Below, in pieces: positions 1-25,649 of a DNA stretch of 64,000 nucleotides. Position 1 is the stretch's first letter, and every line of letters begins with the position of its first letter. A model generated the notes under the pieces. That model did no database searches, was not told the origin of the DNA, and saw only the letters and a list, made by a program, of their open reading frames with translations. The stretch is from NCBI GenBank assembly GCA_904063045.1, contig CAJFCJ010000028.1, forward strand, positions 248,001-312,000, written 5' to 3'. The translations under genes and the position numbers were made by a program. This DNA is from Dimorphilus gyrociliatus. Taxonomy: Eukaryota > Animalia > Annelida.

Positions 1-3944
<3,944 letters not shown>

Positions 3945-22484: not shown

Positions 22485-22872
22485 ATGGACAAGCAAGGAA
22501 ATCCTGTTAGACTCGCTAAAGTAAGAATTTAATTATTTCTTATGAAAGTTTTTGATTTTAACTTACTCTGTTAAAGTTAAAGAACATTTCTAACCAAGAA
22601 AATTTAAAAAAAATGCTTTTAACAATGATTTGTTCCTTTATCTGACGATAATGGGGAAGCATGTCGCTGCCATTTTGTATTAAGTTTTTTTTTCCTTTCA
22701 GGTTACTAAAATTTTAGGCCGTACTGGCTCGCAAGGGCAATGTACCCAAGTTCGCGTCGAATTTATCGATGAACAGAACCGTTCTATCATCCGTAACGTT
22801 AAAGGCCCAGTTCGTGAAGGCGACATTTTGACTCTTCTCGAATCTGAAAGAGAAGCAAGAAGACTCCGATAG
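22485..22872 (+). CDS. RPS28: 40S ribosomal protein S28 (eS28); 2 coding exons plus two 3'UTR exons (23137-23168 and 23324-~23400)
   Basis: [12 protein letters not shown]|[56 protein letters not shown]. The stop TAG is immediately followed by GTAATT; AATAAA at 23375. Not in the ORF track. Confidence 0.97.
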
Positions 22873-22987
22873 GTAATTATTAAAACCTTTCACTCATAGA
22901 CAAGTGTTCGATAGCACGCTGCATAAGCACGATGCATTTTAACTCAAAATTCTGACGTGTTGTCGAACCACGTGCTACGTAGAGCAA

Positions 22988-23114
22988 CCCACTTCCAGCT
23001 CCTAAGAGATAAGAAATTCGTTTCTTAGGCGTTTTCCCTTGTGGGAGATTAGTATCTTTGATCTATATTTAGTATTGATATATAAATGCTAGATACGCTT
23101 GCAAAGTTACAACT
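22988..23114 (+). ncRNA. Box H/ACA snoRNA, SNORA10/ACA10-like (predicted guide for LSU rRNA pseudouridine), in an RPS28 3'UTR intron
   Basis: Hairpin CCCAC/GTGGG with upper stem CCTAAGA/TCTTAGG and pocket TTCCAGCT / CGTTTTC. H box AGATTA at 23046-23051, a second hairpin (ATCTATATTTA/TAAATGCTAGAT), ACA at 23109-23111, total about 127 nt. The pocket is complementary to LSU rRNA GGGAACG-U-G-AGCUGGG. Confidence 0.8.
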
Positions 23115-23715
23115 CTAATAATTTTTTTCTCTGCAGATTTCGTGAACTGTCCAAAGAAGATCAGACAGGTAATAGTCCTTAGTTTCAACTCTGGCCTCCA
23201 CCATTCTAAACGTAATTAACTATTTGTACTTAATTACCTATAACAATAAATAAGACATACTACCTACTATACGTTTTTTAAGTATTCGTTATGAAAAACA
23301 CTGATGATTGTTAATTTTTACAGGTCCGTCAGATGTCTATTGTTATGGCGTTATAAATGTACATTTCACTTGCGAATAAAAAAATTACATGATCAGATAT
23401 TGTTATGTTTGTTATTTATTTTCTTTAAAAAATACAATAAATTGTTCTGAAAAAACGTGAGTTATTGTAAATATAGGTGTCGCTAGTTATTAAAAAAAAT
23501 CATACCGGAAACGGAAACAAGTGATTTCAATATTTTTGCTCTTTAAGACTTCTCACTTGATCACTCTTTCGGGCTTTGTAGTTTAACTACTGCCGCAACG
23601 TGGGTTATGGGCTAGCAATGATTTGATTTATGACCAACTCTAAGTGTTTGCGTCGTATTAATACATAAAGGAAGGAAGCTAGCTTAATAAAATTACCTAT
23701 AAATTTATAATCGAG

Positions 23716-25649
23716 ATGTCGTCAAAGAAGTTAAATGAAGCAAACGTCCAAAAGAAGCTCAAGGAAGTTGAGAATACCATAGACAGTATTCAAACGTTAT
23801 CTTTATGGATAATTCATCATAAGGCTAATCATGAAAGAATTGTAGATCTTTGGCTGAAGTCACTTCAAGAAGGTTGTTATTTTTTAAACAGCTTTAACGA
23901 TAATTGCTATATTTCTCTTTCTTTCATAGCAACTCTGGCCCACAGAGTGACATTGTTCAACTTATGTAATGATGTTGTTCAAAATTGCAAACGAAAACAC
24001 GCTCCAATGTATCAAGATTCATTTAAGAGAGTTTTGACGGATGCTGCTGAATACGTTAAGTAAGATATGAAAGCAATTCTATGTAGATTATAACAGTAAT
24101 GGCTGATATGATAAACAAATATTAGCATAATTCTGACATTTATGACGCTTCCACTTTTTCATTAATTTCTATTTGTTACTATTTTAGAGATGAAGCAATC
24201 CGACAGAAAATTACGCGATTAGTTAAGATTTGGGCAGATAGAAAAGTATACGACAAAGAATTTTTGGTTAATTTAGCTGGAATACTAGGTAGTATGCTAA
24301 TACAATTATTCAAAGTTTGTTCGATTAACAATAATTGTAGTATAAAGCGACAGCTTTTTCAATAGTGTCGATAATTTATTCTGAAAGCTGCTGCAATAAT
24401 GCACGTGTGTGTATTATAAAAAAGAAAAGCGAAATAAAGTATTTTATTTAATTCATTATTTTGTCATATAGATGGCAGAAAAGTAGATACTGATGCTTCG
24501 CACGTTGCGTCTGTGGTTGATGACTTCAAAGTAAGTAAAGTTATTATTCGCTGAATAAATAGTCTTATTTCTAAAATGTAATTATGTTTAAAAGCCTGAG
24601 AAAATTTTAAAAAGGGCAAATAGCTTAAATCCTATTAAAGCTAAGACGGAGAACTTGGACAAGGCACTACGAAATGCAAGAGTTGACGCATCGAACATTG
24701 AGGCAATTAAACAATTAAAAGGTTTATTATTAAAATATAAAGATTCAATAATTACTTAATCTGTAAATATTTACAAGAACAATTCTTAACAGATTTGAAT
24801 CAAGGAAAAGAGTTTTATCAGAATTTTGAAGATTCAGTTGTGAAACTAAAGACCTACGTTGGATATTTAAAGGATGAAATAGTTCAGAGGAAAAGTCTGA
24901 TTGAAGTTTTAGAAGAAGGTTCTAATTATTATTCAACACAAGAAAACGATGCTAAAATAGTAGCAAAAGCTTACAAAAACTTTGGAAAAAGAATGCAAAA
25001 CTGTTCAACTTTGTTGGATCAAAAAATCAAAATCCTTCCTGAACCTGCTACTGACGACAGGGAGCAAGTTGATATGGATCTAGAAGATGATCAGGACTTA
25101 GATCTCCAACTATCACCAATAGCTCCAGAATCAATGAAACCTCTACCGAATCGTGTTCCACCCATGGTAAAAAATACAGCTGCCTCGTTCATGGGAAACT
25201 CAAATATGGGCCAGCAAATTCAAACTTTGGAACTCAATCAAAATGATCCGCGATCCAGACGACGAGAAAAGAATACAGGGATGGAATTTCTGTCTAATTT
25301 ATTTGCACACAATGAACATGGCAATAAAATGCCAACATCTTTCATGCCTGAAGCTTGGAGAAATTCCGGTTCTCAGGGTGATACGCGAAAACCTGCCCAT
25401 CCTTCGTCTGTCCCCTCACCATACACAAGCAACAGACCTTTGAACCCTCCTACTCCCAACTATTACCATAATCGTGCCTCCATACCTAGAACAGGGATCG
25501 AATTAGATCCAATTGCAGCCGATCAACAAAAATTTATCGAAAGACTAAAAGATAGTCGCCAGCCCAGTAGTTTTCAACGGGTAGAGGAAGAACTGCATTC
25601 AGATGGAACACCAGTTCACGATGAAAATAGTGGATTAGCACTAATATAA
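23716..25649 (+). CDS. RPRD2: CTD-interacting domain protein, RPRD2-like; 3' end uncertain (possible further exon at ~25697-25810)
   Basis: CID: TIDSIQTLSLWIIHHK, HRVTLFNLCNDVVQNCKRK, LVKIWADRKVY. The second region ARVDAS...KTYV...YSTQENDAKIVAKAYKNFGKRM resembles RPRD2 more than RPRD1. Confidence 0.8.

Follow-up and report, generated by a model that had tools for sequence, protein, structure and literature searches.

A predicted SNORA63-type dual-guide box H/ACA snoRNA in a 3'UTR intron of RPS28 in Dimorphilus gyrociliatus

We identified a predicted box H/ACA snoRNA of about 127 nt at positions 22988 to 23114 of the window, meaning the whole 64,000-nucleotide stretch of Dimorphilus gyrociliatus DNA that we analyzed. 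Our reading is that this is an intron-borne dual guide of the SNORA63 type, directed at 28S U3420 and 28S U3319, and that it is probably the SNORA63 ortholog in a different host gene. We give this reading a probability of roughly 85%. Judged from its sequence, the feature appears to be real and is very probably a functional snoRNA. It provides an unannotated but well-supported candidate rRNA modification guide for a miniature annelid model, and our literature search found no paper describing snoRNAs of D. gyrociliatus. It is also an example of a snoRNA-bearing 3'UTR intron. A new host gene for the known SNORA63 family would not surprise a snoRNA specialist; the assignment itself is a correction, since the same RNA had previously been placed with SNORA10.

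Host gene and anatomy

The ATG of RPS28 is at 22485 and the stop codon TAG is at 22870-22872. Translation of exon 2 gave the C-terminal 56 residues of eS28, which were 100% identical to the D. gyrociliatus protein DgyrCDS13840. For this search, exon 2 alone served as the query, and the full length of 68 residues is that of the database entry. The original prediction had placed an H/ACA guide in a 3'UTR intron of RPS28, and both the match to DgyrCDS13840 and the anatomy described below agree with it. A minor correction concerns the intron itself: with the stop at 22870-22872, the host intron runs from 22873 to 23136. The positions of all features are collected in Table 1. The model of the RPS28 3'UTR introns is based on GT-AG sites and conservation only, and in a two-species comparison, conservation falls at the exon borders of these introns.

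Table 1. Positions of the RPS28 features and of the parts of the predicted snoRNA in the window. HP1 and HP2, first and second hairpin; relative, the related worm described in the text.
Feature	Position	Strand	Remarks
RPS28 coding region	22485-22872	+	exon 1 22485-22520, intron 22521-22701, exon 2 22702-22872
First 3'UTR intron of RPS28 (host intron)	22873-23136	+	GT directly after the stop TAG, AG 23135-23136; GT..AG in both species
Predicted mature box H/ACA snoRNA, SNORA63-type dual guide	22988-23114	+	about 127 nt; hairpin-H-hairpin-ACA layout, conservation, ortholog fold
HP1 lower stem	22988-22992 (CCCAC) with 23041-23045 (GUGGG)	+	5 of 5 pairs invariant in both species
HP1 pocket, 5' strand UUCCAGCU	22993-23000	+	pairs with 28S AGCUGGG 3' of U-G; 7 pairs, 1 G-U
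HP1 upper stem, 10 bp, and 9-nt loop	23001-23029	+	23001-23010 with 23020-23029
HP1 pocket, 3' strand CGUUUUCCCUU	23030-23040	+	first 7 nt (CGUUUUC) pair with 28S GGGAACG 5' of U3420; 7 pairs, 2 G-U
H box AGAUUA (ANANNA)	23046-23051	+	16 nt after the pocket top (23030-23045)
HP2 lower stem	23054-23060 with 23102-23108	+	one mismatch per species, at different places
HP2 pocket, 5' strand	23061-23066	+	CUAU (23063-23066) pairs with 28S AUAG 3' of U-C
HP2 upper stem, 10 bp, and 8-nt loop	23067-23094	+	100% of cells paired over both species
HP2 pocket, 3' strand ACGCUUG	23095-23101	+	pairs with 28S CAAGCGU 5' of U3319; 7 Watson-Crick pairs
ACA box	23109-23111	+	invariant in the relative; 25 nt before the 3' splice site (AG 23135-23136); 3 nt from the predicted 3' end
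3'UTR mini-exon, 32 nt	23137-23168	+	inferred model; 94% identity to the relative; AG and GT flanks in both species
Second 3'UTR intron, without snoRNA	23169-23323	+	57.5% identity to the relative
Terminal 3'UTR exon	23324-23400 (end approximate)	+	AATAAA 23375-23380; 94% identity to the relative

The RNA has the features that define the box H/ACA class: an ANANNA hinge, an ACA tail, pockets 14 to 16 nt from the boxes, and bipartite antisense elements flanking a U-N dinucleotide. The layout that had been read from the letters (a unit of about 127 nt, the AGATTA hinge, 16 nt from the pocket top to the H box, and an ACA box 25 nt before the 3' splice site) was present in every part. The 16-nt distance in HP1 lies within the usual range but near its upper limit. 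The second hairpin spans 23054-23108, and the 3' strand of its pocket lies 14 nt before ACA (23095-23108). The region 22988-23114 folded better than all of 200 shuffles (z = -4.7), with two hairpins in the minimum free energy fold. The unit is single-copy in the 78-Mb D. gyrociliatus assembly that we used for all genome-wide searches. We rejected a classification as a scaRNA; no UGAG CAB box is found in either apical loop.

We also considered whether the second 3'UTR intron holds a box C/D snoRNA, as low-scoring matches to snR48 (21.9 bits) and U13 (13.8 bits) were seen at 23284-23399. This candidate was rejected because the matches extend across the intron/exon border and the relative lacks an intact C box: the C-box-like TGATGA at 23302-23307 reads TCATGA there.

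From established H/ACA biology, we infer that the RNA would be expressed by release from the spliced first 3'UTR intron of RPS28 and would then be processed by exonucleolytic trimming. It would be packaged with dyskerin/Cbf5, Nop10, Nhp2, and Gar1. In the resulting particle, the 5' pocket would position 28S U3420 and the 3' pocket 28S U3319 for pseudouridylation, so that both uridines would be isomerized in the pre-28S rRNA. Hosting a snoRNA in this place need not destabilize the RPS28 mRNA. The usual limit for exon junction complex-dependent nonsense-mediated decay is 50 to 55 nt after the stop codon, and the two 3'UTR exon junctions of the model, at 0 and 32 nt after the RPS28 stop, would both fall under it.

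Two further genes border the locus. Upstream, ORF translation indicates a gene resembling carbamoyl-phosphate synthase in the same orientation, and a gene with a CID domain starts at 23716 (the Pfam CID domain was found on the copy of the relative).

Conservation in a related worm

The same eS28 protein is encoded on the Logan contig L010 (run SRR23372215), and a second run gave an identical sequence (L037). The contig is genomic and syntenic with our locus: the promoter and both 3'UTR introns are on it, as is the beginning of the neighboring CID-domain gene. We assign it to another species on sequence grounds, because the N-terminal 115 residues of the CID-domain neighbor are 76% identical and the introns are largely unalignable. 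A search with this neighboring gene reached the same related species again, so that our comparisons involve one relative in all.

Identity to the relative varied by segment. The coding exons were 97 to 100% identical, the 3'UTR exons 94%, the second 3'UTR intron 57.5%, and the host intron upstream of the snoRNA 41%. The snoRNA itself was 88.9% identical. Its differences to the relative, 16 in total, were distributed unevenly: one fell among the 39 guide and box positions and 15 among the 88 others (Fisher p = 0.02). The ortholog, when folded alone, assumed the same H/ACA shape (z = -3.7). Over the two species, 95% of stem cells were paired, with one compensatory change and two changes from G-U to a Watson-Crick pair, a covariation that carries no statistical weight with two species compared.

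The individual parts of the RNA can be followed in the same way. In the 5' strand of the HP1 pocket, CCAGCU is the same in the relative, and the 3' strand of this pocket is invariant. The HP1 upper stem of the relative has one compensatory change from A-U to U-A, one from G-U to A-U, and one broken pair. Its H box reads AUAUUA, so the change is only at a free N position. Both strands of the HP2 pocket are invariant. The HP2 upper stem shows one change from U-G to C-G, and its loop sequence is unlike between the species. From this pattern of substitutions, we conclude that the guide strands and boxes are under purifying selection.

One difference in gene structure was seen in the same comparison. 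At the position of the RPS28 coding intron (22521-22701), the relative has no intron and the exons are fused precisely (L010:183-184), and both 3'UTR introns are kept. This could be a loss of the coding intron in the relative or a gain in D. gyrociliatus.

Pairing to 28S rRNA and equivalence of the target uridines

To score the pockets against the rRNA of the species itself, we took one complete rDNA unit, delimited 18S, 5.8S, and 28S with Rfam, and tested both pockets against all 1495 uridines. The 5' pocket had been predicted to pair with GGGAACG-U-G-AGCUGGG of the conserved large-subunit sequence. The 28S rRNA of D. gyrociliatus carries this sequence, and GGGAACGTGAGCTGGG occurs at least 8 times in the genome, each time within LSU rDNA. 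Among the 1495 uridines, the best site for HP1 was 28S U3420, with 7 + 7 pairs including three G-U pairs and a score of 12.5, compared with 8.5 for the next-best site. The pairing to the organism's own 28S was thus as foreseen, with U3420 as the outstanding site. The 3' pocket had been left without analysis in the original prediction, and we can now assign it to 28S U3319. This was the best HP2 site among the 1495 uridines, with 4 + 7 pairs, all Watson-Crick, and a score of 11 compared with 4.5 for the next-best site. No 18S site scored above 6.5 in any register tried.

The fit of both pockets is better than chance. For HP1, the score was reached by 5 of 2000 shuffled pockets and by 8 of 2000 places drawn at random from the genome with the same geometry. 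The corresponding counts for HP2 were 15 of 2000 shuffled pockets and 13 of 2000 random genomic places, a figure about three times weaker than it looks, as the HP2 register (top 23066/23095) was picked among three tried. A loose scan that tolerated G-U pairs gave little but noise, and stricter tests took its place. When the whole genome was searched with strict patterns for guides to U3420 or U3319, which would miss weaker guides, the lists were at chance level and held no other convincing guide. When the pattern matches were inspected by eye, the RPS28 unit was alone in having its two strands joined directly by a proper stem.

In the course of the rDNA searches, we observed copies of the rDNA on at least six contigs (C5, C137, C164, C184, C222, and C223). 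The unit spacing is about 9.1 kb on C164, and two copies lie 18.3 kb apart on C5.

We then placed the two uridines on the rRNAs of other organisms. In an ungapped alignment to the annotated E. coli 23S rRNA, U3420 is E. coli 2575 and U3319 is E. coli 2474. U3420 follows the equivalent of the A-loop U2552, position 3397, by 23 nt. Yeast Ψ2944 lies at this same distance of 23 nt after Um2921, the equivalent of U2552. In yeast, snR37 guides Ψ2944, which equals human U4521, i.e., 4491 in older numbering (2026 bioRxiv preprint). U3319 is 101 nt upstream of U3420, and the distance between human 4491 and 4390 is also 101. By alignment and spacing, then, U3420 is equivalent to yeast Ψ2944 and human Ψ4491 (4521 in the new numbering), and U3319 is equivalent to human Ψ4390. 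For U3420, the alignment to E. coli 23S and the equivalence given in the preprint confirm the three counterparts (E. coli 2575, yeast Ψ2944, and human Ψ4491) that the original prediction had named. Both target sites are in domain V, adjoining the peptidyl-transferase center, and both are known pseudouridines of other eukaryotes.

Family assignment and alternative readings

SNORA63 (E3), a vertebrate H/ACA snoRNA, targets 28S-4390, and its formerly orphan pocket has an evolutionarily conserved antisense element to 28S-4491 (Deryusheva, Talross and Gall, PMC6984369). According to the same paper, the 4491 element of SNORA63 explains why Ψ4491 persists where SNORA10 has been lost or has diverged (PMC6984369). 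The annelid RNA has a pocket for the 28S-4491 equivalent and, in its 3' hairpin, a pocket for the 28S-4390 equivalent. Because this target pair occurs in the same hairpin order, we file the annelid RNA as SNORA63-type on the strength of its predicted targets, and it is probably the SNORA63 ortholog in a different host gene.

Both RNAs are built of two hairpins in the H/ACA arrangement and measure about 130 nt. In SNORA63 (RF00092), the 5' pocket carries CGUU(C/U)(C/U)CC, antisense to the GGGAACG that lies 5' of 28S-4491, as it does in the annelid RNA, where the 3' strand of the HP1 pocket aligned to CGUUCCCC of the Rfam consensus. The 3' pocket of both has CUAU and ACGCUUG around 28S-4390, at 14 nt to ACA. 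Here, the 5' strand of the HP2 pocket aligned to ACUAU of the consensus, and ACGCUUG together with its 14-nt spacing to ACA is identical in the consensus. There are also differences. The Rfam consensus of SNORA63 is without the full 7-bp 5' strand (CCAGCU) of the 5' pocket, whereas the annelid RNA has one, and the distance from the pocket top to the H box is 16 nt in the annelid RNA compared with 14 nt in SNORA63. The vertebrate host of SNORA63 is EIF4A2, whereas the host in D. gyrociliatus is the 3'UTR intron of RPS28.

Rfam searches were made at two levels of stringency. At gathering thresholds, the whole 64-kb window gave no match, and a genome-wide search with RF00092 gave nothing. In a permissive search of 141 nt (E<=10, 4227 models), SNORA63 was the top match with 16.8 bits and an E value of about 0.9, far below the gathering threshold of 90 bits. 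The SNORA63 alignment ran end to end (1-130), with CGUU..CCC, CUAU, ACGCUUG, and ACA superposed. For the ortholog from the related worm, SNORA63 was again the top match (15.7 bits), and neither ortholog had a reported match to any other H/ACA family. This ranking rests on the same guide elements as the assignment by targets, and so it is consistent with that assignment rather than independent of it.

The alternative that survives best is a genuine dual guide for the same two uridines that arose independently in the dinophilid lineage, by convergence or by pocket shuffling. The shuffling of antisense elements between snoRNA families is documented (PMC6984369), and the Rfam score above is not significant. 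The distribution of the guide is also in keeping with a separate origin. A comparable guide near RPS28 was absent within 4 kb in Helobdella and in three molluscs, and downstream of RPS28 in Capitella none was found in the approximately 250 nt available. An exact-pattern scan of metagenome contigs returned 0 matches. As far as our tests go, the RPS28 host location would appear to be known only from dinophilid-like worms. Descent from SNORA63 as opposed to convergence is therefore not proven, because the host differs from that of vertebrates and the same guide was not found near RPS28 in the other spiralians tested. Against an independent origin, the two targets occur in the same hairpin order as in SNORA63, the Rfam consensus shares the 3' guide strand ACGCUUG, its 14-nt distance to ACA, and the 4-bp CUAU side of the 3' pocket, and of the 4227 models no H/ACA family other than SNORA63 was reported for either ortholog. 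With these shared details in view, we regard an independent origin as unlikely, and we continue to read the RNA as a probable SNORA63 ortholog.

In the search for relatives, eS28 proteins that were at least 90% identical also came from intronless genes in dense clusters of ribosomal protein genes on environmental contigs (L011-L026). The sources of these contigs have compact genomes and are probably microbial eukaryotes, of no use for the comparison, and identity in eS28 says little about relatedness.

The original prediction had taken the RNA for an annelid ortholog of SNORA10 (ACA10) and yeast snR37, a guide for 4491/2944 that had moved to RPS28 from RPS2, the host of SNORA10. It also noted a presumed likeness to human SNORA10 (CAGCTCC...GGCGT). 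The 5' pocket does fit the equivalent of the 4491/2944 uridine, for which snR37 is the guide in yeast and SNORA10 the predicted one in humans, so that each shares one target with the annelid RNA. The second pocket, in contrast, argues against the SNORA10 assignment. Human SNORA10 targets 18S-210 in addition to 28S-4491 (PMC6984369), whereas the second pocket here is best at 28S U3319, scores at 18S sites stay at 6.5 or lower, and the published pair of 4491 and 4390 is that of SNORA63. Among the 4227 Rfam families, neither SNORA10 nor snR37 was reported even at E<=10 on the 141 nt, which is the outcome of the covariance-model check that had been suggested for SNORA10. Yeast snR37 differs further, in that large elements specific to it recruit Upa1-Upa2 and serve as a scaffold for pre-60S assembly (2026 bioRxiv preprint). 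The annelid RNA is a minimal two-hairpin guide of 127 nt with short loops, a second and different target, and no room for such elements. Thus, membership in the SNORA10/snR37 family is quite improbable. Of the earlier idea that the same guide sits in a different host gene, the 4491-equivalent target and the RPS28 host stand, while the SNORA10 identity gives way to a SNORA63-type one.

Two readings deny that a working guide is present, and we consider both very improbable. The conserved block could act in cis as a structured element in splicing control or autoregulation of the RPS28 pre-mRNA, with a coincidental H/ACA look and rRNA complementarity; it is indeed conserved and lies in a 3'UTR intron, and yeast RPS28 mRNAs are reported to be autoregulated through elements in the 3'UTR, but two independent pockets each fall on their best rRNA site (p of about 0.003 to 0.008), both sites are known pseudouridines elsewhere, the boxes are at canonical distances, and substitutions avoid guide and box positions. 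A decaying or unexpressed snoRNA-like relic might explain the one mismatch that each species has in the HP2 lower stem, but the RNA is 89% identical across species whose other introns are near random, no guide strand or box is disrupted, and the genome searches gave no other convincing guide to U3420 or U3319.

If the shared ancestry of the annelid RNA and SNORA63 is true, then the coupling in one guide of two pseudouridines near the peptidyl-transferase center would be ancient, with the host gene freely exchanged. We can offer a broader picture only tentatively. The two-target design of SNORA63, for the equivalents of Ψ4390 and Ψ4491 on either side of the peptidyl-transferase center, might date from the protostome-deuterostome ancestor and might have hopped hosts, to be found in EIF4A2 in vertebrates and in RPS28 in dinophilid annelids. 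In the compacted genomes of these worms, the snoRNA might also keep the RPS28 3'UTR intron alive, because the relative is without the RPS28 coding intron yet retains the host intron.

Finally, two short noncoding elements near the snoRNA are kept in the relative. The sequence CACGTGCT, at 22969-22976 and 12 nt upstream of the snoRNA, contains an E-box-like CACGTG and is retained amid otherwise unalignable intron. It could be a promoter element, a processing element, or a chance match. In the intergenic region, a conserved block at 23504-23537 consists of ACCGGAAACGGAAAC followed by GATTTCAATATTTTT. The CID-domain gene begins about 180 nt downstream of this block, which is probably an ETS-type promoter element of that gene.
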